Positions 2,796 through 32,400 of a stretch of DNA of 64,000 bases are shown piece by piece; within the stretch, counting starts at the first letter, position 1; every line of letters starts with the position of its first letter. Source of the stretch: Eutreptiella sp. 'Long Island Sound 2002'. Lineage: Eukaryota; Protista; Euglenida. The position numbers were made by a program, and so were the translations under genes. The stretch covers positions 165,292,001 through 165,356,000 of the forward strand of contig OZ038378.1 of the NCBI GenBank assembly GCA_964036045.1, in the 5' to 3' direction. Below the pieces are notes generated by a model. It was not told the origin of the DNA. It made no database searches and worked only from the letters and a program-made list of their open reading frames with translations.

Positions 2796-5700
2796 TGCTG
2801 CGTTCCCCTACTCCCATCCCTTGGTCGCAACCAGAGCAGCATGCGGTCAAAAGGGTTTGCAAACGCGTGTAATCACGCACCAAGCGGTGTATGCGTCAGT
2901 TGGGCACGAATCTGCAGTGAATGTGTGCAGACAAATGTCTACAGCGTCGGATGACCGTGAAACGATCATGTGCAACACATTTTCAACGGCTGGCAGTCAG
3001 TCGCCGGCAGTGACTGACTGCAGATGGCGCATCAGTTGATCAAAAGCTGCCGGTGGTTAAGTGTCAACTCGCCGCGGCTACTTTGCACCGGGTGACCACT
3101 AACCAGCGCCAGTTGACCACCGCCTGCTGTTGTTTAAGCGCCAACTATCGATGGAAGTTGAACCCGACCACAGAGTTTGTTTTCTGTAATTCAAAACCGT
3201 TGGGAGCACGCACTTCAATACTTGAGACACACTGCACACCCTCGTATTCGCACCCACATTGCGTTGCATCAATGACTTTGATGTATGTGCATCTGCTTGT
3301 CTATGCCAAAAAGCTGCTGTATGTGTTTTACTGCTCCGGGGAAAGGGCGCTCCTTTATCGCTCCCTTCTGTTTCGATGCTTTTGCACTGGGGACCGCCAT
3401 CAGGGAGGGCTGCGAACCGCTCATCACCGCCAAACACCGTCGGTGAACCGCCGTCCAATGTCACCACCGTCAATGAAAACCGCTGTCGGGCAGTAGCCAG
3501 TCGCCGTTGTTTAACTGCCAACCGCTGGCGGTTGATCACCGACCCTTGTTCCTTTCTCTGCCCTGCATAACAATTTTGTACGTCCTCTCCGAATGGCTGC
3601 ATTGTCACAGGGACCCTTTCTGCTTTTTTGTCGCTGAATTATGGAGCCCTGACTTGAGACGCTTTTTTTTAGATAGCTGTCCCTGAAAACGGTCCTGAGC
3701 AAAGCGGTGTGCAGTGCTGCCGTCAGGTCAGTCAAGGCAACGGACGTGAAGACCGACACGCGGAGCAGTCACCTTTGGGGCATACCATTGGCTTGAACTC
3801 GACCGAAATCAACTCCAAAATTCTGCACCGCACTAACAAATGACTCGGGGTCCACTGCATGGATCACCTCTGCAGAGACAGAATGCAGGGGCTCAAACAG
3901 AGCCTGGAAGGATAGTAGGGGGCGGGGAGGTGGGGGCGGGAAGGGAGGGTTCTCCAGAAAGATATAAATAAATCCGGTTGATACGTCCGATGTAACGCAC
4001 TTGTTCGAGTTTTGTCAAGGAAATCCTCCATTTGACCATGGAAGTCCATTGCTATGCGAGACAGCACATTGGCTGTCCGGTGTGCATCGCATCACAGTTC
4101 TTTCCTGTGCTGACGGGACTTGCGGGCAGACATTCCGGTGTGCCGCTGTTGCCATATGTCAGCTTGTGTTTTGTAAACGGGAGGTGCAGGAAATGCGTTT
4201 TGGTAGGCGAGAGTGCGACAGTTGTCCCTCTGCTCGCAGGTGCTGCTACTGTCCCCATGGCGTGGATGGGGGGAGTGGGGCAACCAACCCACCCTTTACC
4301 TGGTACTCCAAGGCATCTGCTAAGAACAGGGCATGTGGACACCAAATCAGGGATTTGCTTCCTGAATCTGACCACAGACCAAGAAACATTCGATAAACCG
4401 GGCACAAACTCAAGGCAACATTCGGCTCTGGAGTAGCGTGACTCAGTTCGTTGAGGAACACAGCCCATCCAGCATTCTGGTTGGACTCGGGCAATTCAGT
4501 GAATTGTTCATGGCCATGTTGTCAGACAACTATTACCGGTCCAAAAGCCCCGACTGACCACGGGGTGCTCGTTGGACAGGTCCGTACATTCCCCATGTAC
4601 GCACGAAACTTTTTCTCCGGTGGGTTGTGCTGGATATATGTTCCGTCAAACCCTGCTACTTGAGTTTAGACGACAGCACTGTCTCAGCATGAAGACAATA
4701 TCAAGGAGTTTGCAGCTGCATGCGTGCTCAGGTGCTTTCTGGATGAGGATCGCCGATGATATATTGGGGGTGGACTCTGCACCACAAAGGACTGCATGCT
4801 CAGCTGAGCTGTGCGTGAAAAGAGGACACATTCATCCATCCAAAAGGCACCATAGTATCTGTTACACAGCAACATGCAGCAAAGCAGGGACATAAGCCGT
4901 GCAGATGCATCACACATGCATCAACTCTCGTCCGTCCAAGGGGACAGCGTGCTGGACTGCGCAAGAGGTTTGGTGGCTTATAAAGGTCCTAACACTCTCG
5001 GATTTGGTGCAGGGAATTGCTTAATGGCCGGTCAAAACTACACCTGGGGGAGGGGTCTGAGGGTGGGTGGATGGGTTTGTCTGAGTGTCCCCTCATTTTG
5101 GGAAAAGTGCAGAAGGGGGGGGGGGGTAGCTCTTTGGGTGGGTGGGTGGGTGGGTTGCGTGTGGCCTGGCGTCCCTCCTCCGTACTACAGATCAAGGGCC
5201 TTCATTGTGTCCAGGTGTCTGTTGTCTATAGGTACGTTTGGCGGTAGAACAGGCTCTGTGACCCCCCCCACCCTGTGTATACGGGTGGGTGTGTGCGTGG
5301 GTGGGTCCAGATGGAGCAATGGGTGGGTGAGTGGGCCGGCCAAAAATCCTGGGAAGGCCAATGTAGCCCCCCCCCCCCCCCCCCCCCCAAGTATCACTCT
5401 AACCATAGCAGTATGGGTTCGCTCCGGCCCTCTTTTGAGGAGGTCTAACGGCCCAGGGCCACGAAGCAACGGAAACTCAGCTACCGAAAAGCCCCCGGCC
5501 CAGGGGGGGGGGGGGGTTGGACGGGGGAACATTGCTGGTTGTCGCACAAAGCGGGTGGGGGTGGGGTGTGTGGGGGGGGGGGGGGGCAGTAATTGGCATG
5601 TGCTAGCCCTGGCGCAGCACTTTTTTCATGCTCCCTTCCCGCCACAAGTGCCAGGTCCAGCCACAGGGGTACAGCTGAGTGGGTCCTGCTGGACGCCTTC

Positions 5701-6304
5701 GTTGGCAGCCCCAGAGGCACAGGAGTCGCAACGGCGGCAGCAACCGGATGAGTTACGGACAGGGCAGGAGGACAAAGGGCATGGCAATGACAAAGGAGAG
5801 AAGAAACCAACAATGGTTGAGCGAGACGACGGAGGTCTATCAGGGACACCGCTAGGACAATCACCCTCAGAGGGTGCACACGGTGCGCACGCGGTTGAAA
5901 TACGCCGAGTCATGCGCTGGCGTGCCGACGGGTGGTCCTCACCACACGACTCATGCCCCGGAATACCCTCCAACCTCCGCCCGCCTTTCGGATGGTTCTT
6001 AGTAAAGCGTAAAATTGAAGAACAATGGGGGGGGGGGTTTGCACTGCGCGCACGCACTGTGACAGTAGGAACTGCCGCCACGCGAAATAGGACTTGTGGC
6101 CAAACTTTGCGGATTTCCAGCCCATGAGTCGGTAAAAAGATCGCGATTTCCGAGGTCGAATTTTCGTGGGGCTGCGCTTCACTACTACAGCACTCGCACG
6201 CGGTGCAGACTCTCGCACGCGGTTCCTCAACGATGGGCGTGCCCGGGGCCTAGTGGGCAGAGGGAGGAGGCACCTCGGCCCGCATTGCAACGGATGGACA
6301 TGAC

Positions 6305-6540: not shown

Positions 6541-7993
6541 CTGGGGAAGGACGGTGCGTAGTGCAGGGCACGCGCACGTGGCAGGACGCAACCAATGGAC
6601 TTCAACGGGAATTGGGCTGGGCTGGCCTTGGGGGATCTTGTGCTGTGGTTTCCACTATTTGTGTGCTAGAGTCCTCCATGCTACAATGGCAGATCTCAAT
6701 ATTCCCCGTACATTTCTCTATTTTCTGGCACCCATTGAACAATTATGAGCACTTTTGGAATGCTGAGCATTTACATGTTGTTTTGGTGTATGCATGCTCC
6801 TCTAGACCGTGACCATTGTAATGCCCTGGTCCAAGAGCGCTGGGGAGCTAAAGGAGGAGGTCACTGTCTTGATGGGGGATTAGCAAGTCAGCAACAATGC
6901 AACCCGACTGGTGGCCTTGGACATGTTGTATGCAAACCATACCAAAATGGGGGGGAGGAGGAGGAGGAGCTGCCGGCTCTCGGCGCGGACCCCATGCCAG
7001 CGGGTAGCCGGGAAAGGGTGTCCACTCCCCGTGTCTCCACCACACGGTCTCTGAGCAGTTCACTGGCTGGGAGGGCGCAACCACTGGACTTCAACGGGAA
7101 TTGGCCATGAAGCAACGGATACTCAGCTCTCGATCATCCCCGTGTCACAGACGATCGGTCATCGCTCAGAATGTTCTGCTGCACTGCAGCACTGCCATAT
7201 CAACGGGAATTGGGGGGGGGGGGGTGCCATCAAGGCTGAATATGCCGGTTGGTAGTTCCGCTGTACGTACTCGTTCACATTTTGAGGAGGAAATCCTCCG
7301 CGTGGCTAACCCCAACAGCCGGGGAAACGTATTTCACTCGGTGAGAGTGGGACAGTTGTCCCTCTGCTGCTTCTGCCCCTTGGCGTCCCTCCCATTCCGG
7401 CGCCGGCGATGCTCCACACAAAGCCTTTCCCAAGACGGGGGGGTGGGGGGTAATGCCCCTTTCTCGGACAGTATGTCAGGGTTCTGGCGAACGGTGCCCC
7501 TGATAGGCATCAGTCTTCACGCCCAAGGCTCTGCCTGACCCGTGTTGGGCGGGCGTAAAAGTGCATCCTCTGCAGCCTTCACTCCACGTCCTGTTGACAG
7601 CTCCTCTCTTCTTTCCGCACTCCGTTCGCTGGCTGTGTTGTGGGGGACCTTTGCACTCACCTCGGACACGCAAAGGGGCGGAGTGGAGCTGACGCACGTG
7701 ACGTTACATGTTGAAAGTCCCCCTGCCAACGCGCTGCCCAGACAACACTTGATGTTGTTTGCGCGACTTTTGGAACTGTGGATTTTGCGGCCTCATTTTT
7801 TCATTCGAATAGAAATGGGATTCTGATGGGCCAAGGGGGGTCAGGGCTCGCCGTATTGTTCAGTGAAACAAAACAAACGTCACGTAGCTTGCAGCAAAGA
7901 AGGGCCTCAGAACTCAGCCAGGGTGCTTGAAGGTATGGCACCCCTCCCTCTCCTCATGCTGGCCCCGTACCCTAAAAGAGCTGCCATACTTAC

Positions 7994-15419: not shown

Positions 15420-16247
15420 GGCGCGCCCTTGCTATTGGTGCGCACGGTTCGGTCACAAAGCCCAAGATTATGGCATTCCGTACCTATATGAAGACGAGCC
15501 GGAGTGCCAATACAAACTTAATCAGAAAGACAAGCTTATCATCCTCAAACATCTCCTACTGACTTGTACTTCGCTCTCAAACATGCAGAATCAATCGACG
15601 GTGACCCTGTTGATTGGGAAGATGTCGCAAAGGAGATCCGGGTGGATACAACGGGTTGGCCAAATATGCCACACAAGAAAGGTCCTGCTCAAGTCCTACA
15701 TGCTGCTAAAGTCGGTCTAGACCCTTGGACTACATTGGACGATGTGGGCACGGATGGTTCGCTTTCGCAGTGTTATACACCGGAAGAGTTTGCACCCAAG
15801 GAGGACATTTCTTCTCAGGAGTCTGCGGTTGCTACAGTGGGAAATGCACTGAATGACTTGGGTTTTACCCCCGAGTGGAAGAAAAGCATTGACAACAAAC
15901 TGGTGAACCTTGCGGGTAATGTATCCAACTTGCAGAAATCGCAGAATGCCTCCCTGGGAATGATGCGAATTATGCTTCAGACACAAGGTGTCCCGAACCA
16001 TCTCATTGAGCAACAAATGGCCGCTGCTGGTTTTATGCATCCACCGCCACAAGATCGCTCACCCCAGAACTGTAAGGCACCGGCACCACTTTCATCCCCC
16101 GCATCTTCATCTACGGCACCAGCTTTGGCACGAAATGCTGTACCACGGGATAGGACTAAACTATGGTGGGATCAAACGACGATCTTTTTGAAGGAGATGA
16201 GCATGATCCAAAGCTATCATGGGGAGAAGACACCAACCCAGTCATGA
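15420..16247 (+). pseudogene. Decayed protein-coding segment of unknown, probably mobile-element, origin
   Basis: Protein-like reading (LGRALAIGAHGSVTKPK...YFALKHAESIDGDPVDWEDVAKEI...) with an in-frame TGA near 15560. No family recognised. Confidence 0.35.
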
Positions 16248-24863: not shown

Positions 24864-25046
24864 ATGCAGGCCCAGCGCAGGTGGCAAATACCCCCCCTTT
24901 TTGGGGGGGGTCCGTTGCTTGTCATACCCCCATGGGTGATTTCGCATGTCTTACGGTGTGATATCATAATTTGGGGGTAGGAAACGCCCCTGTAGTTTAT
25001 TTTTCATGATTGACCACTCCACATCCCCCGTACCGGGGGGTTCCGG

Positions 25047-25813
25047 GGGCAACGTCTCCGGTGGTTTGGCGGCGGCGGTCGTTGGGGCAACGTCTCCGGT
25101 GGTTTGGCGGAGGTTGTTGTTGGGGCAACATCTCCGGTGGTTTGGCGGCGGCGGTCGTTGGGGCAACGTCTCCGGTGGTTTGGCGGCGGTTGTTGTTGGG
25201 GCAACATCTCCGGTGGTTTGGCGGCGGCGGTCGTTGGGGCAACGTCTCCGGTGGTTTGGCTGTGGCGGTTGTTGGGACAACGTCGCCGGTGGTTTGGCGG
25301 TGGCGGTTGTTGGGGCAACATCTCCGGTGGTTTGGCGGTGGCGGTGGTTCGGGCAACGTCTCCGGTGGTTTGGCGGCGGCGGTTGTTGTTGGGGCAACGT
25401 CCCCGGTGGTTTGGCGGTGGTGGTTGTTGGGGCAACTTCCCCGGTGGTTTGGCGGCGGTTGTTGTTGGGGCAACGTGTCCGGTGGTTTGGCGGTGGTGGT
25501 CGTTGGGGCAACGTCCCCGGTGGTTTGGCGGCGGCGGTTGTTGGGGCAACGTCTCCGGTGGTTTGGCGGCGGCGGTTGTTGGGGCAACGTCTCGGGTGGT
25601 TTGGCTATAGCGGTTCGTGGGTCAACGTCTCCGGTGGTTTGGTGGTGGCGGTTGTTGGGGCAACGTCTCCCGTGGTTTGGTGGTGGCGGTTGTTGGGGCA
25701 ACGTTGCCGCCGTTTTGGCGGCGGTTGTTGTTGGGGCAACGTCCCCAGTGGTTTGGGTGCGGTGGTTGTTGGGGCAACCTCTCGGGTGGTTTGGCGGCGG
25801 TTGTTAGGGCAAC
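25047..25813. repeat. 38-bp GC-rich minisatellite, left part (about 20 units)
   Basis: Unit TTGGGGCAACGTCTCCGGTGGTTTGGCGGYGGCGGTYG, with occasional 41-bp variants. No spacers. Confidence 0.95.
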
Positions 25814-25991
25814 TGGGATGCAGCGTTCTAGGGCGTGGTGCGGAACCCCCCCAATTTTGGGTGTTGTTAATATGGTTGGAACCCGGAATTTCACATGTTA
25901 CAAGGGTGCACTATGATGCAACAATGTGCCTTCCATGTATTGTTTGCTCGATATTGCCCGTTTTGCACTTTTTGCGATTTGATCTTTGTGT

Positions 25992-26141
25992 GCTCTAACT
26001 AGTTATCGCGGGGTTAGAACGGGGTTAGAGCACTAGTTATCGCGTGGGTTATCGCGCGATAACCTAGTTATCGCGGGGGTTATCGCGGGGGTTATCGCGC
26101 GATAACTAGTTATCGCGTGGGTTATCGCGTGGGTTATCGCG
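25992..26141 (+). repeat. Left TTATCGCG array (9 copies) with CTAACTAG elements
   Basis: Counted directly. Includes the palindromes GGTTATCGCGCGATAACC (26047-26064) and GTTATCGCGCGATAAC (26091-26106). Confidence 0.9.
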
Positions 26142-26199
26142 CTTCATTTTATGTTTCCCCTTTTCGCTTTAGCTCTCAAAGCCTTCGTATTCTTTGATA

Positions 26200-28329
26200 A
26201 TGGCCCTTGCTGCTGCCCACGCTTGGTGCGAGCACCATCAAAAGCTCCTTGGGGTCCGTCGCCTTGGCGGTCCTGAGGGGTTTACGATGGGTGATGCCAA
26301 TGTGAGGCGCCCTGTGGCGACCCGCTTTGAACATGGTGTGGACTTTGGACTCCTTGTCCATAAGTCCCCCTTCATGGCGGACGACCGAGACCCCCTGGTT
26401 CTCAGCAACTACATCTTCGAGTTGCTAGAGGTAAATCCAGGGGTTGCTGGATTTTTGATCCAGCTTCATCCGGACGATGTGGACGCGGTGGTGGAGTCCG
26501 TCACCGCCCATGCCGAGAAGGGTGCGGGGACGAAGACGACCCTCTATGTGGGTCAGGAGGAGGAGGAAGTGGAGGAAGTGGAGGAGGAGGAGGAGGATGC
26601 GGGGGGGGTGGGGGCTGGGGGGAGGAAGGAGAAGCCCCACAACCCCCTCATGATTAGTGTCCAGAAGGTAAGGATCCGACCGGGTAAGGGGAAGGGGCAG
26701 TCGGATGGTTGGTTCCCCCAACCCCTCACCCACAACACCCGCCGGGTCTGCACTGACGACCCCGAAAACAAGCTCCCCATGCACTCCCTTTGCCCCACAA
26801 GGGAGTGGGAGCGTGAGTGGTATGGGGTCACCACTCCCAACATTGTTTCGGGGCAGGGGGTGATTCTTTTTCCATTTGGGGCAACACCCCCCCTTATTGG
26901 GGAGGCGGAGGAGGTGGTTGCCGCCGAGCCCTTGGGGGCCTTTAATAGGGACCCCAATGACCTTGTGCTCACGGTGGGGGGGAAGCTGGTGGTCAACCAC
27001 CTCCTGGAGCACGATTTTTTGAGTGCTGTGCAGCTCCAAAGTCTTTTGGATGATTTGGATAGGGTGCCTCTCTCAGAGAAGGCACCCATTTTCAATGAGA
27101 ACCCCCCCATTGTCGGCAGGCCCCAAGATTCTGGGACCCGCCGTACATTGTACGGCAACTATGGGGGTGCCAACCACCACAGGCACAACCCCCACAAGCT
27201 CCATGATCTGCCAGTCCTCAAAAGGGTGGCAGATCGTGTGCTTGAGACGGCGAAGAAGACTGTGGTGGGGGGGGTTGGATGGAGCTGCACCATCCTTGAC
27301 ATGGCCGAAATTTCGAGCTATGACCACACCCCCCAGCACCTCCATCGCGACGCCCCCCCCTACACCATTCCTGAAGGCACATTGATTGTCAATTGCCTTA
27401 TTATGCTAACCCATAATCATGAGGAGGAGGATGGGTCACATTTTCTTTTTGTGCCCTCCAGCAGTTCGGGGTTCCCTGACCCTTGGGTGGAGAGGGCTGT
27501 GCCATTCAAGAGGGGCACTGCCTTTTTTTTTAATGCCCTTGATGTCCACAGGGGGTCGGGGATTCCCAAGGCCTCCCCCACGGGGGTGTCCCACCCCCGC
27601 CTCATGGCATTTTTTGCCATTGAGCTTACCGTGGGGGGGAATCTTCGATTCCCCAACCTGCACGTGACCCAGTCCATTAAGAGGCCCCAGCTGGGGGCAC
27701 CTGGTGGCCGGGTGGCCAGGACAGTCCAGTGTGATGGGGCGGTTAGGTGTAGGGGGAAGGTGGTAGCCAATTGCTACGGATGCAATCGGCTGATTTTGTG
27801 CACCGCCCACAAAGATGGCCTTTGTGTGCCATGCCAGGAGGGGGAGGAGGTGGAGGGGGGGGAGGAGGAGGAGGTGGTGGTGGACCCCAATGGGGTCAGC
27901 ATTGAGCAATCTGCTCAGTGCTTGCTCCCGGTGGGAACAACCACAGGGCATTTTTTGTTGTCGGGGTGGGGGGTTGGGAGGGAGGTGATTGCCCCCCTCA
28001 CTAATGAGGAGGCGGGGGCGGTCGCAGGCCACCCCGATCAGTGCCCCTTGGCCAAGGTGTGCCATGGGGAGGCACTGCCCTGGCCCACCCTGCAAGGGCA
28101 TGTTGGGATGAAGGTGCCGGCGGGCACCATTTTGGTGGTGAGGAGGGGGTTGTATGGGGGAGTGGCAAGGGTGGCCCCTGAGGCGGAGGGGGTGGCCCAG
28201 GTGGTGGAGTGGCGGCAGGTGGGGGAGTATGCGGCCGTCACGGACTTCGTGTGGCTGCGGAGGCTGGGCCTGGTGCTGGACGACGCCAAGAAGGAGGGCC
28301 AAGGCATGTGTCCATGTCACCAGGTGTGA
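26200..28329 (+). CDS. Intronless 709-aa protein: acidic linker, 2OG-Fe(II) dioxygenase-like domain, C7H zinc-finger-like cluster, C-terminal beta-rich domain
   Basis: First ATG at 26200, TGA at 28327-28329. QHLHRD (HxD at 27343-27351), FKRGTAFFFNALDVHRGSG (His at 27547), RLMAFFAI (Arg at 27598). C-x5-C-x7-C-x2-C-x5-C-x2-H-x4-C-x2-C at 27730-27834. Confidence 0.88.
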   Translation: MALAAAHAWCEHHQKLLGVRRLGGPEGFTMGDANVRRPVATRFEHGVDFGLLVHKSPFMADDRDPLVLSNYIFELLEVNPGVAGFLIQLHPDDVDAVVESVTAHAEKGAGTKTTLYVGQEEEEVEEVEEEEEDAGGVGAGGRKEKPHNPLMISVQKVRIRPGKGKGQSDGWFPQPLTHNTRRVCTDDPENKLPMHSLCPTREWEREWYGVTTPNIVSGQGVILFPFGATPPLIGEAEEVVAAEPLGAFNRDPNDLVLTVGGKLVVNHLLEHDFLSAVQLQSLLDDLDRVPLSEKAPIFNENPPIVGRPQDSGTRRTLYGNYGGANHHRHNPHKLHDLPVLKRVADRVLETAKKTVVGGVGWSCTILDMAEISSYDHTPQHLHRDAPPYTIPEGTLIVNCLIMLTHNHEEEDGSHFLFVPSSSSGFPDPWVERAVPFKRGTAFFFNALDVHRGSGIPKASPTGVSHPRLMAFFAIELTVGGNLRFPNLHVTQSIKRPQLGAPGGRVARTVQCDGAVRCRGKVVANCYGCNRLILCTAHKDGLCVPCQEGEEVEGGEEEEVVVDPNGVSIEQSAQCLLPVGTTTGHFLLSGWGVGREVIAPLTNEEAGAVAGHPDQCPLAKVCHGEALPWPTLQGHVGMKVPAGTILVVRRGLYGGVARVAPEAEGVAQVVEWRQVGEYAAVTDFVWLRRLGLVLDDAKKEGQGMCPCHQV

Positions 28330-28347
28330 AAACCTCCCACAACACCC

Positions 28348-28533
28348 TGCTCTAACCCCTGCTCTAACTAGTTATCGCGCTAGGTTATCGCGTTCTAACT
28401 AGGTGCTCTAACTAGTTATCGCGCTAGGTTATCGCGTTCTAACTAGTTATCGCGGGGTTATCGCGGGGGGTTATCGCGGGGGTTATCGCGCGATAACCTA
28501 GTTATCGCGGGGGTTATCGCGCGGGTTATCGCG
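28348..28533 (+). repeat. Right TTATCGCG array (11 copies), same orientation as the left array
   Basis: Counted directly. Palindrome GGTTATCGCGCGATAACC at 28481-28498. Followed by a T-rich tract ending in CAG (28564-28566). Confidence 0.9.
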
Positions 28534-28833
28534 TGTTTTTTTTTTTGTTTCTTTTGTTTTTTTCAGGCCACCATCTTGCAGCTGCCTAGTTAGAGCAAGG
28601 TGCTCTAACTGCGTTCTAACTCTGTTCTAACTGTGCTCTAACTCTTTGACCCCCCCCCCAAAAACCACCCCCATGATGCGGGTTATGTGGGGAAAGAAAG
28701 GGGATGGGGGGTTTTTGAGGGTGCTGAATCCATTTTTTTAGGTGGTTTGCCCCAAAATTGAGGGTAGGTGGGTGTTCCAGAAATTGCGTTCTAACTAGGG
28801 GTTCCGCACCACGCCCTAGAACGCTGCATCCCA

Positions 28834-29465
28834 ACGTCTCCGGTGGTTTGACGGTGGCGGTCGTTGCGTCAATGTCTCCGCTGGTTTGGCGGTGGCGGTT
28901 GTTGGGGCAACGTCTCCGGTGGTTTGGCGGTGGCGGTTGTTGGGGCAACATCTCCGGTGGTTTGGCGATGGCGGTTGTTGGGGCAACGTGTCCGGTGGTT
29001 TGGCGGTGGCGGTTGTTGGGGCAACGTCTCTGGTGGTTTGGCGGCCGCGGTTGTTGGGGCAACGTGTCCGGTGGTTTGGCGGTGGCGGTTGTTGGGGCAA
29101 CGTCTCTGGTGGTTTGGCGGCCGCGATTGTTGGGGCAACGTGTCCGGTGGTTTGGCGGTGGCGGTCGTTGGGGCAACGTCGCCGGTGGTTTGGCGGCCGC
29201 GGTTGTTGGGTCAACGTCTCTTGTGGTTTGGCGGCCGCGGTTGTTGGGGCAACGTGTCCGGTGGTTTGGCGGTGGCGCTTGTTGGGGCAACGTCTCTGGT
29301 GGTTTGGCAGCCGCGGTTGTTGGGGTAACGTCTCCGGTGGTTTGGCGGTGGCGGTCGTTGGGGCAACGTCGCCGGTGGTTTGGCGGTGGCGGTTGTTGGG
29401 GCAACGTCTCCGGTGGTTTGGGGGTGGCGGTTGTTGGGGCAACGTCTCCGGTGGTTTGGCAGTGG
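28834..29465. repeat. 38-bp minisatellite, right part (about 16-17 units)
   Basis: Same unit and orientation as 25047-25813, resuming immediately after the right TIR. Confidence 0.95.
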
Positions 29466-32400
29466 CTACCGGTCATCCTATGCCAACACAAGAAACTATC
29501 ATGCGCGGACGCGCTCGGCAGTTTGCGCCGCGGGGACGTGGGCTAGTACACACAAGTGGCCCCACTTGCACCTTCTCCAACACCACCAAACCAACCCATC
29601 CCCACCCATTACCATACACCACGCACCACTTGCCACACTAGATGGCACCCATGTCAGCATTGGTAACGAGGACAAAATACACGTACCACGGACACATGGC
29701 GGGGGTTAAGATGATGCGCTCGCCACAAGCGGCACTTGGCGTCAAAATGGAGCAGAAGGTTCTTCCCTTGTTGGGACCCCTTGTGACCCCGCAAGTGAAC
29801 ATACGAGGGCCTAACAACTGCCGCTGGGGAGGGGTTTCCTAGCGCAAGGGCCGTGTGAGAACCCGACATGGTGTAGCGACACAGGGAAAGTCCCAGGGCT
29901 CCGTTGGCACAACCTACCAAGGGAAAGGTAGGGTGCGAGAAGAGGGCCTCGGAGACCAAGGAGGGAGGGGGAGGACCCAAGGTGGTGAGAGGCCCATGGG
30001 CGCCATGCATATGAAACGTGTCAAGGAAAGGTGAGCATGTGGCGATTGTCCAATAGGTGCTGCTGGTAGCAAAGGACAACACGAGAGCTGGGCGTCATGG
30101 CCAATCTCCCTATGGGCCCCTGCTAGTGAGTACTTTGTTCTTTAGATTGGCATGGGTCGGCTGAAAGTTTTTGAAAATTTGACGCTTTCCCAAATCCCTA
30201 CACAGTGGCTACTAGGCCCATGTAGCCGTGCCTTGGACCACCCCAAAGGCCCCAAACTGCTGTTATTTCTCGGCTACTTAATGGCACCTTTTTTGGAAAA
30301 TTTTCGAAAACTTGTTTTTTTCGGACTCATTTGGTCGCTTTTGGCATGCGTTCGGGTGGTCATTTGGCGACAATTCAGGTGTTATAGCACCCATGGGGTC
30401 CCACATAGGGGCAACTAAGCCCATGTGGCCTCAGGCATGGGCACCCCAAAAGCCCTAAAATTGCTGCTTTTTTGTTACTTGGTTGGCTTGTACCCGTCAC
30501 TGTGTGTCAATTTCGCAGAGACAGGGCATGGGGGACAGGCTCAGGCTGATCAGGCTGTATGCGGCCGCCAGGGGTGAAGTCAATGACTCAGGGGGGGGGG
30601 GGATCCACTGTGTACTGGCCTTCAGAGCAGGGCAGCGCAATGCAAGGATCAAATCAGGACGTGGACACAGAGTGCAAACAGTGTGGGTCGCCTGCGATCT
30701 GTACGTTCCACAATTTCCCTCTATATAGACCCCCTGAACCATTGATGGGTGTCGCAAGCATTAACAACCATCAACAACCAGTAGCAATCATTAGCGACCA
30801 TGGTCAACCATTGGCGACCATTTGCGTGCATCTCAGGGACTCCGTTTCGAAAGCAATTCGTGTATGTATACCTCCGCGCTGTTAAGCCGGACATCAGGCA
30901 CACAACCGGCCATTCCTGGAACAGCCGCGATTTCAACACTCGCTTGATTTCGGCCGCCACCCTGCTGGGGTTGGGATTGATTAATTCGACGGATGCACAC
31001 TGGATCGACGTGGCCGGGTCATTCAACATTCAAATCTTGTTCACCCGAGCCGCAGAACGAAGGTCTTTCTTTCTCGGAACCTCTCATGTAAGATATAAGA
31101 TTTCCATGTAAGCCCCATGATGCTCGCTAGAATTGCCGTCGGAACTTGACGTGGATACATGCACGTGGACCTGCTTGGTGCATATGTTGACTCCCACCTT
31201 GCTTGTGATTGGTTTCCAAATAAAGTATCCTTGACATGGTGGCGTGGTTGAGTTGTAATCAAGTTCAGTCATCAGTATATATTACCCAATCCGCTTGTTG
31301 AAGGTGCAAATTGGAACGGTGCTTTTGGTGCACTCCGCCTGTCACGCCCAATAGAAATGGTCAATAGCTTCCTACAATGGTTGACATGGGATTGCATTCT
31401 AGTGCTGTCCACTACGACGGTGTTTAACTACTATAACATCCTTGTGTAAGTACCATGCACAATCTTTGCTTGACGCTTCAAAGTACATGTATTAGCCATC
31501 CACATCCATCATTCACAATGGTTGCATGCATGGGGGAGATTCATTTGAGTTGACATTGGTTTGGATACCCCATGATTCGTTCGTTTATCTCTTGTGCATT
31601 TCGCAGCTTTCTTGAGGATCTATCAGATGGAATGGACTCAACTTGTTCTGTGCAATGTAGAACTATAAATGTAATTGCAAACTGCACATTGGGATCTGCA
31701 AAGCGTAAGTTGAACCTCTAAACGTGTGAAATGCAAGTTCCACGGGTACACAACATGCAACAAACATCCGCACAGCGTGCATGCATGACGTAGTTGCCTG
31801 GTGAGAGGTTGTGAAAAGTGTTTGCTCAGTGTTTGCACCCGATTTCCTCAGCTGCCCCCGCCCCCAACCCAACCCTATTAGTTTGTTACTACTTCTCCCC
31901 GAACCAAACACATCCTAAACCCTCCCCACAGGAACGCACCTAAACTCGCTCGTTTGGCCAAGTAGTGCCAGCGAAAGCAAGATGAAACGGTAAAGGTACG
32001 AGCCCTTTGGGCGCCCAGCCTGTACTGTACCATGTAAACACACCATTGTTGACAAAACATGACTAGTGCGGGCCATGTGCCAAGTGCCACCTGTGGCTCC
32101 GGCACAGAGCTTTGCTGAAGGTGGGGTACACTGCAGTGTTCTTTTTTTTTTTTGGGAGGGGGGTGTTTGGGTGTTCTGGGGCCTGGGGGTGGGTTGGTGG
32201 GTTTGGTTGGGTTGCTTCTGGGTTGCTGCTGGCGGCCCCCGAATGCGGTGGGTACCAAACTATTTTGATCTGGGTACACGGTCTGTGGTTTGAGATCCGT
32301 GCCACGGGTGGTCCCCTGTCCAAATCCTTGACCCCCAACACCCATGCCCGCCACCAACCCCTCCGGGCCTCCGGCCCTGACCATCATTTGCCGGAGAAGG

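Follow-up and report, generated by a model that had tools for sequence, protein, structure and literature searches.

Introduction

DNA transposons that carry a dioxygenase gene have so far been described with genes of the TET/JBP type, in fungi, above all in ESTA, Plavaka and EnSpm of the CMCT group (Kojima 2025, PMC12730594). CMCT elements are defined by a transposase with the signature D..D..C(2)C..H(4)H..E, by a target-site duplication (TSD) of 2-5 bp and by termini that mostly read 5'-CA..TG-3'; in the fungal elements with a TET gene (TET+), among which ESTA has a 2-bp TSD, no role has been proven for the oxygenase (PMC12730594). Here we analyse a stretch of 64,000 nucleotides from the euglenid Eutreptiella sp. 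'Long Island Sound 2002' (contig OZ038378.1, positions 165,292,001 to 165,356,000; hereafter the window), in which a 3,020-bp element bounded by terminal inverted repeats (TIRs) encloses one long open reading frame (ORF), ORF1, for a putative Fe(II)/2-oxoglutarate (2OG) oxygenase. This element is very probably an internally deleted, non-autonomous copy of a young, high-copy cut-and-paste transposon of 7,090 bp, termed here the master, and ORF1 is one of the transposon's own genes. The closest described systems are the TET+ CMCT transposons of fungi.

The family resembles these fungal transposons in being, by prediction, a DDE cut-and-paste element with a short TSD and a conserved 2OG/Fe(II) dioxygenase gene beside its transposase. 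However, the oxygenase is PhyH- or prolyl-hydroxylase-like, the host is a protist, the TSD can be any dinucleotide rather than TA, and the termini read TG..CA rather than CA..TG. The family also has two more ORFs, with motif arrays before each gene. An earlier account of TET/JBP genes in KDZ transposons is reportedly that of Iyer et al. Internally deleted derivatives of class II elements are themselves familiar, as Ds from Ac, dSpm from En/Spm and the deleted P elements. The window copy is like these in keeping its termini, in having lost its transposase, and in belonging to a family with copy-specific deletions and junction microhomology; unlike them it keeps one complete accessory gene, and its mobilisation in trans is presumed.

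Master element and deletion

Mapping of the TIRs onto eleven sampled copies revealed a full-length form of 7,080-7,092 bp in seven of them, with a mutual identity of 99.7-99.96%; the copies were sampled through the ORF1 protein, which biases the set towards copies that keep this gene. The master (L006:9527-16616) encodes ORF1 (680 amino acids), ORF2 (413 amino acids, a coiled-coil protein), ORF3 (202 amino acids, a small oxygenase-like protein) and ORF4 (552-579 amino acids). When ten loci with the commonest ORF1 variant were fetched, the gene order 680/413/202/552 recurred at six, and all full-length copies have ORF1 as their first gene. The window element is collinear with master positions 1-2773 (99.6% identity) and 6843-7090 (100% identity) only, so that an internal deletion of 4,069 bp has removed ORF2, ORF3 and ORF4, with 1 bp of microhomology at the junction. 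It thus has the termini and TSD of a longer, coding-competent element and matches it throughout except for one internal gap. Other copies are interrupted elsewhere: one with identical, perfect TIRs measures 5,002 bp and lacks 3902-5982 (L001), two lack 2129-2597, a gap inside ORF1 (L002), or 3156-4949 (L007), and a fourth is rearranged (L004).

The features of the window copy and of its insertion site are as follows, in window coordinates.

25814-28833, plus strand: whole non-autonomous element, 3,020 bp, equal to master positions 1-2773 plus 6843-7090
25814-25849, plus strand: left TIR, 36 bp, 5'-TGGGATGC...GGAACCCC
26003-26141, plus strand: 5' TTATCGCG array upstream of ORF1, 9 direct and 2 inverted copies, with adjoining G[CT]TCTAAC motifs
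26287-28329, plus strand: ORF1, 680 amino acids from an ATG, or 711 from a TTG at 26194; intact and uninterrupted
28349-28533, plus strand: second TTATCGCG / G[CT]TCTAAC array, the master's ORF1-ORF2 intergenic array
28534-28586, plus strand: pyrimidine tract and the first codons of ORF2, up to the junction 28586|28587 (master 2773|6843)
28589-28797, plus strand: 3' subterminal region with G[CT]TCTAAC repeats
28798-28833, minus strand: right TIR, 36 bp, perfect reverse complement of the left TIR
25030-25813, no strand assigned: host 38-bp minisatellite, left side; 25812-25813 (AC) is the left TSD copy
28834-29530, no strand assigned: host minisatellite resumed, right side; 28834-28835 (AC) is the right TSD copy

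The first-pass annotation, made from the letters of the window alone, had read the locus as a dedicated non-autonomous element that spreads an oxygenase, with the ORF as its cargo. That interpretation is not borne out, as the element is an apparently one-off internal-deletion derivative of a four-ORF autonomous transposon, the ORF is the first gene of the 7,090-bp master, and sister copies carry other deletions. Its description of a mobile TIR element devoid of a transposase does stand, both by comparison with the master and by the copies at other loci, as does its estimate of a young element, given 99.6-100% identity to the master. The autonomous partner with the same termini that it had suggested looking for is the master itself, which encodes a CMCT/RAG1-like DDE transposase candidate.

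Termini, insertion site and motif arrays

The 36-nt TIR pair, correctly annotated as perfect in the first place (25814-25849 and 28798-28833), is present at just two sites in the window, with none expected from 100 shuffles, and the termini 5'-TGGGATG..CATCCCA-3' are found in every copy of the family. The boundaries are independently defined by contigs from separate sequencing runs of the same organism, which diverge to many flanks exactly at 25814 and 28833. The insertion lies in register with the minisatellite: counting 38 and 3022 from 25804, where the interrupted unit begins, leads to the start of the next unit, 28864. Taking out the element together with one AC regenerates the unit ..GGGCAAC|GTCTCC.., so that the clean insertion reported earlier is confirmed by the register that is kept and by the duplication of AC, a 2-bp TSD absent from that report. 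A 2-bp TSD of variable sequence flanks 12 of 12 copies (TA, CA, CA, CA, TT, CT, TA, AT, CA, GA, TA and AC).

The motif TTATCGCG occurs 23 times in the element and is absent from the remaining 61 kb of the window. Its arrays are CpG-rich and in the master precede ORF1, ORF2 and ORF4, with a fourth, inverted array near the 3' end (master 6780-6835) that the window copy has lost with the deletion.

ORF1 encodes a predicted PhyH- or prolyl-hydroxylase-type oxygenase

The reading frame first described as an intronless ORF of 709 residues is indeed uninterrupted, at 680 or 711 residues according to the start codon. In the 680-residue form its motifs QHLHRD, DVHRGSG and PRLMAFF stand at positions 350, 419 and 437. 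The window protein differs from the commonest family variant, P0034, at two positions, both non-catalytic, and intact 680-residue variants with 11 and 36 differences retain all catalytic residues. An exhaustive HMMER search yielded four full-length relatives at 26-31% identity, and when these are aligned to the window protein, Q350, H353, R354, H421, G423, R438 and eight Cys/His ligands are invariant. The domains and proposed ligands map as follows.

26956-27657, plus strand: double-stranded beta-helix (DSBH) 2OG/Fe(II) oxygenase domain, approximately residues 224-457
27343-27351, plus strand: H353-R354-D355, proposed HxD iron ligands; H and R invariant, D in four of five sequences
27547-27549, plus strand: H421, proposed distal iron ligand (xxHxGG), invariant
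27598-27600, plus strand: R438, invariant; proposed ligand of the 2OG C5-carboxylate
27730-27834, plus strand: Cys/His cluster C482, C488, C496, C499, C505, H508, C513 and C516, all eight invariant

In Pfam, PhyH (PF05721) alone is matched, in the same region of four members, at 15.6-19.4 bits (E 0.0014-0.02), below the gathering cut-off of 22 bits. A profile of the ORF1 alignment run against the PDB returned 13 PhyH-type oxygenases and otherwise nothing of note (E 0.016-0.38); in these alignments QHLHRD coincides with the Q-x-[WF]-H-R-D iron motif and xxHaGG with the distal His, and the metal residues line up with the iron ligands in FtmOx1, 4nao and 9wyc. In the AlphaFold2 model the core of residues 224-457 shows a jelly-roll strand pattern, and Foldseek searches of the PDB and Swiss-Prot retrieved 2OG oxygenases only, namely SptF, FtmOx1, AndA, AsqJ, PHYHD1 and prolyl hydroxylases. 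The prolyl hydroxylases equal or exceed PhyH in structural score, while PhyH is the best family by sequence. TET/JBP (PF12851) was matched neither in Pfam nor in the PDB profile search, nor among the top 50 Foldseek hits in the PDB or the top 30 in Swiss-Prot, and AlkB homologs rank low in the fold-search lists. Because only such matches were returned and TET/JBP never, ORF1 is classed, by sequence and model comparison, as a DSBH 2OG/Fe(II) oxygenase of PhyH or prolyl-hydroxylase type and not of TET/JBP type. We infer from its residues a catalytically active hydroxylase.

The metal triad with its downstream Arg (H353/D355, H421 and R438), proposed from this single sequence, is thus conserved at 26-31% identity, and the leaning towards PhyH over TET/JBP, the zinc-finger part (here a conserved Cys/His zinc cluster) and the expected double-stranded beta-helix have likewise been upheld, the last by Foldseek and the strand pattern of a model with a predicted local distance difference test (pLDDT) score of 42. 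Around the core the protein has an N-terminal part of about 220 residues, the Cys/His cluster and, at the C terminus, a conserved module that ends in CxCHQV. The eight invariant ligands of the cluster would probably bind two zinc ions; only weak pattern matches, to the AN1 zinc-finger and the piggyBac CRD, were obtained for it, and an Atlas search with the C-terminal 210 residues gave scores of at most 0.6. It is in these added modules, together with its 680 residues, its place in a transposon and its Pfam scores under the gathering cut-off, that ORF1 departs from the known PhyH and prolyl-4-hydroxylase (P4H)/PHD oxygenases (FtmOx1, SptF, AsqJ and PHYHD1; P. putida P4H and PHD2). We also considered ORF1 as the transposase and rejected this, given its oxygenase fold and the DDE candidate elsewhere in the master.

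ORF4 as a transposase candidate

The 552-residue ORF4 (P0222, a cluster of 275) contains, in order, VISVDAT, LTGDGK, CWLC, GDYQHAACR, HWCLAH and, 20 residues on, IPTEYRH. This signature, D..D..C(2)C..H(4)H..E, has the order of the CMCT transposases (EnSpm, Mirage, Chapaev and Transib, related to RAG1), and ORF4 is absent from the window copy. Two decayed paralogs with 24-36% (up to 40%) amino acid identity retain it:

L016:990-2603: decayed, distant ORF4-like transposase copy
L016:6491-8158: decayed, distant ORF4-like transposase copy

These two distant copies in L016 show several deep sub-lineages of ORF4-type transposase to coexist in the genome. The signature is also kept in two relatives, L018 and L019, found by a metagenome scan with the ORF4 core on contigs of 1.6-1.8 kb (30-34% identity, E 6e-54 and 4e-61). 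In language-model features ORF4 adjoins the RAG1_RNase_H, Plavaka and Transposase_21 clusters, with a score of 0.93 for RAG1_RNase_H and a recognition value below threshold. ORF4 is probably a DDE transposase of the CMCT type: with EnSpm/CACTA, Mirage, Chapaev, Transib and RAG1 the family shares the order of the signature, present in the ORF4 of the master and in all its relatives, and a TSD within 2-5 bp, but it differs from them in lacking a significant Pfam or PDB match and CA..TG termini.

ORF1 in distant lineages

Three contigs from other assemblies (L013-L015), about 3 kb long and bearing ORF1 relatives of 25-27% identity, start with TIR-like termini of the pattern TG[AG]GGTGCG..AGGAAG..AACCCCCCC, just before the ORF1 homologs, and the sequences of L014 and L015 part exactly at the terminus. 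Lineage-specific motifs recur here too: in L014, 22 copies of GGAACCCCC form two non-coding blocks that flank the ORF1 homolog, and TTCCTGCAC brackets the homolog in L013. Because relatives in other assemblies likewise sit just inside similar termini, ORF1 is, as far as these sequences tell, an ancestral accessory gene of the lineage and not cargo special to the window copy. Pairwise ratios of nonsynonymous to synonymous substitution (dN/dS) against older copies are 0.33-0.56 for ORF1 and 0.28-0.46 for ORF4, values to which both neutral decay and selection on active lineages contribute. A metagenome scan with the ORF1 alignment returned pattern matches and no relatives.

A chimeric gene call on an 851,303-bp contig (P0251, 585 amino acids) joins about 190 N-terminal residues of ORF4 to a divergent ORF1-like C-terminal part with WHRD..HRGG.., a Cys/His cluster and CxCNQV, and represents a further ORF1-like sub-lineage in the genome.

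Abundance

A word-based search with ORF1 gave 33 clusters with identities of 81% or more, every one of them from a single ENA assembly; two of these clusters hold 220 and 491 member sequences. The ORF4 clusters (275, 174 and others) also come from one assembly. In sequencing runs of the same organism the single-copy flank contig has a depth of about 47 (run X5) and about 7 (run X8), and individual element unitigs reach about 100 times the flank depth, with a far higher summed depth, depth not being equal to copy number. From cluster sizes and unitig depth we read the family as having at least hundreds of copies. The multi-copy ORF that the first-pass annotation had proposed to check for is thus a reality; it lies inside TIRs at every locus examined, and no copy outside TIRs was seen at these loci.

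Discussion

We propose the following course of events for the window copy and its family. The loss of ORF2 to ORF4 may stem from excision followed by interrupted gap repair, a route that other class II elements also take and that the 1-bp junction microhomology fits. The deleted copy would then have inserted into a minisatellite unit. Since its TIRs and most of its subterminal motifs are kept and ORF4 is lost, it could presumably be moved only by transposase supplied from full-length copies. ORF1 would most likely be an Fe(II)/2OG-dependent hydroxylase tethered to its target by the zinc and C-terminal modules, and would serve the transposon as an accessory factor.

Several observations weigh against parts of this interpretation. 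ORF4, 13 members of its family and its two metagenome relatives find no match in Pfam, sequence and profile searches of the PDB with ORF4 gave nothing relevant either, and its AlphaFold2 model, built on a shallow alignment, is unusable (pLDDT 33). The termini are TG..CA and not the usual CA..TG of CMCT elements, a TG start being shared by the distant termini of L013-L015. For ORF1, every sequence match to oxygenases falls under curated thresholds, the model is poor, and the distant relative P0147 has Q at the position of the Asp ligand. Furthermore, we know of no PhyH- or P4H-type enzyme that acts on DNA. The mobility of the window copy is itself uncertain because of the lost inverted 3' TTATCGCG array.

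As to what the hydroxylase does, our preferred guess, a tentative one, is that ORF1 counters host silencing at the CpG-rich TTATCGCG arrays; it is favoured by analogy with the TET/JBP genes of fungal transposons. Nearly as likely, because the fold is prolyl-hydroxylase-like, would be the hydroxylation of a protein of the transposition machinery or of a host factor. It is more doubtful whether a fuller scheme applies, in which a RAG1-related transposon lineage of euglenid-like protists independently acquired the non-TET hydroxylase ORF1 together with ORF3 and kept it over deep divergence, and the zinc module directs ORF1 to the arrays, where it erases or rewrites a silencing mark on DNA or chromatin. 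If true, this would be a convergent and mechanistically new anti-silencing device, and ORF1-only derivatives could provide it in trans.

We would give about the same low credence as to this scheme to ORF1 as a second transposition subunit similar to TnpA of EnSpm, an element that requires two proteins; the zinc cluster would then bind the subterminal arrays, and the oxygenase fold would be structural or inactive. The conservation of the zinc cluster and the C-terminal module, the lineage-specific arrays that flank ORF1 in all lineages, and the missing Asp ligand of P0147 are all compatible with such a role. However, two His and the Arg are invariant and the Asp is present in four of five sequences, which argues for retained catalysis, and arrays also lie in mid-element, upstream of ORF2 and ORF4, where regulatory sites fit better than end-binding.

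A self-standing ORF1-only subfamily, selected and amplified because the oxygenase benefits it, was the view of the earlier note and is very unlikely. It would account for a nearly consensus, intact ORF1 between two perfect TIRs, and for ORF1 protein clusters that are no fewer than those of ORF4. Against this, the sampled copies have different deletions, in L002 within ORF1 itself; the junction 28586|28587 recurs at none of the 17 other loci fetched; among the sequencing-run contigs listed, those reaching 28586 turn to master-type sequence there; and 99.6-100% identity to the master leaves no time for separate selection. Similarly improbable is the transduplication (Pack-type capture) of a host gene or gene family with no role for the transposon. 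It would suit the fact that oxygenases of PhyH and P4H type are commonplace enzymes of the cell. Against it, the relatives found in three other assemblies adjoin similar termini on the inside and are likewise set between motif arrays, ORF1 invariably comes first in the full-length copies, its dN/dS is low like that of the transposase, no copy outside TIRs was seen, and ORF1-like sub-lineages occur inside transposon chimeras (P0251).

If the window element is, as we favour, a deleted copy of the master, it is in itself an ordinary derivative and a handy natural 'ORF1-only' allele. The wider interest lies in the family, in which a RAG1-related transposon lineage of an unrelated protist group would carry a different type of oxygenase, conserved in sequence and position. 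This suggests that the pairing of an oxidative modifying enzyme with a transposase arose more than once. With its TG..CA ends and a 2-bp TSD of any sequence, the family would add a divergent branch to the clade that gave RAG1, and because it is very young with intact genes, both transposition and oxygenase function are directly testable.

Literature searches found no link of Transib or RAG1 with Euglena and none of PhyH with DNA transposons.

Additional reading frames and genomic setting

ORF2 and ORF3 (L006:12247-14100) share one frame with a single TGA between them, which persists in the master, L002 and L017 (86% identical) and is replaced by a Cys codon in the decayed L016. The peptide directly after the TGA, ahead of any Met, looks conserved, and readthrough or splicing to a fusion of about 616 amino acids is possible. 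ORF3 alone (L006:13492-14097) has no Pfam or PDB sequence match; in the language-model search it matched small 'Fe2OG dioxygenase' clusters at a score of 0.96 (recognition 2458), and the structural neighbours of these clusters include 2OG-FeII_Oxy_3, Tet_JBP and AlkB-like proteins. It carries GGEFWV and HAP..GERWSVIFY, with H-L-R-D (HxxD) as its first metal motif. Tet_JBP appears in our analysis only as this remote language-model neighbour of ORF3, a gene that the window copy has lost.

Estuary metatranscriptome contigs (runs X1-X4), among them one of 812 nt that spans 26778-27538, agree with ORF1 at all but 0-3 positions, which suggests that the organism or a very close relative lives in estuaries. 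The element may be transcribed, although contigs of RNA libraries could also stem from DNA carry-over; no spliced-leader or intron joints were seen in the contigs, which cover parts of ORF1.

The minisatellite that hosts the window copy has about 40 units, with variants of 35 and 41 bp, and several of its frames are free of stops on both strands. Long ORFs reported inside it are most likely artefacts of the repeat. An Rfam search of the window gave no match. One further contig with family sequence (L008, ctg8357_86x_c, 140,576 bp) has a right TIR at 15702-15737 and no left TIR at up to five mismatches; its coverage label is about twice the usual, its name carries the suffix '_c', and a dUTPase gene lies nearby. 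Genes for piggyBac-type transposases (PF13843, DDE_Tnp_1_7) are found a few kb from three copies (L002:12640-13962, L004:7017-8465 and L007:4174-5517), and reverse-transcriptase and Helitron-like fragments lie close to others, so that the family resides in DNA rich in transposable elements.

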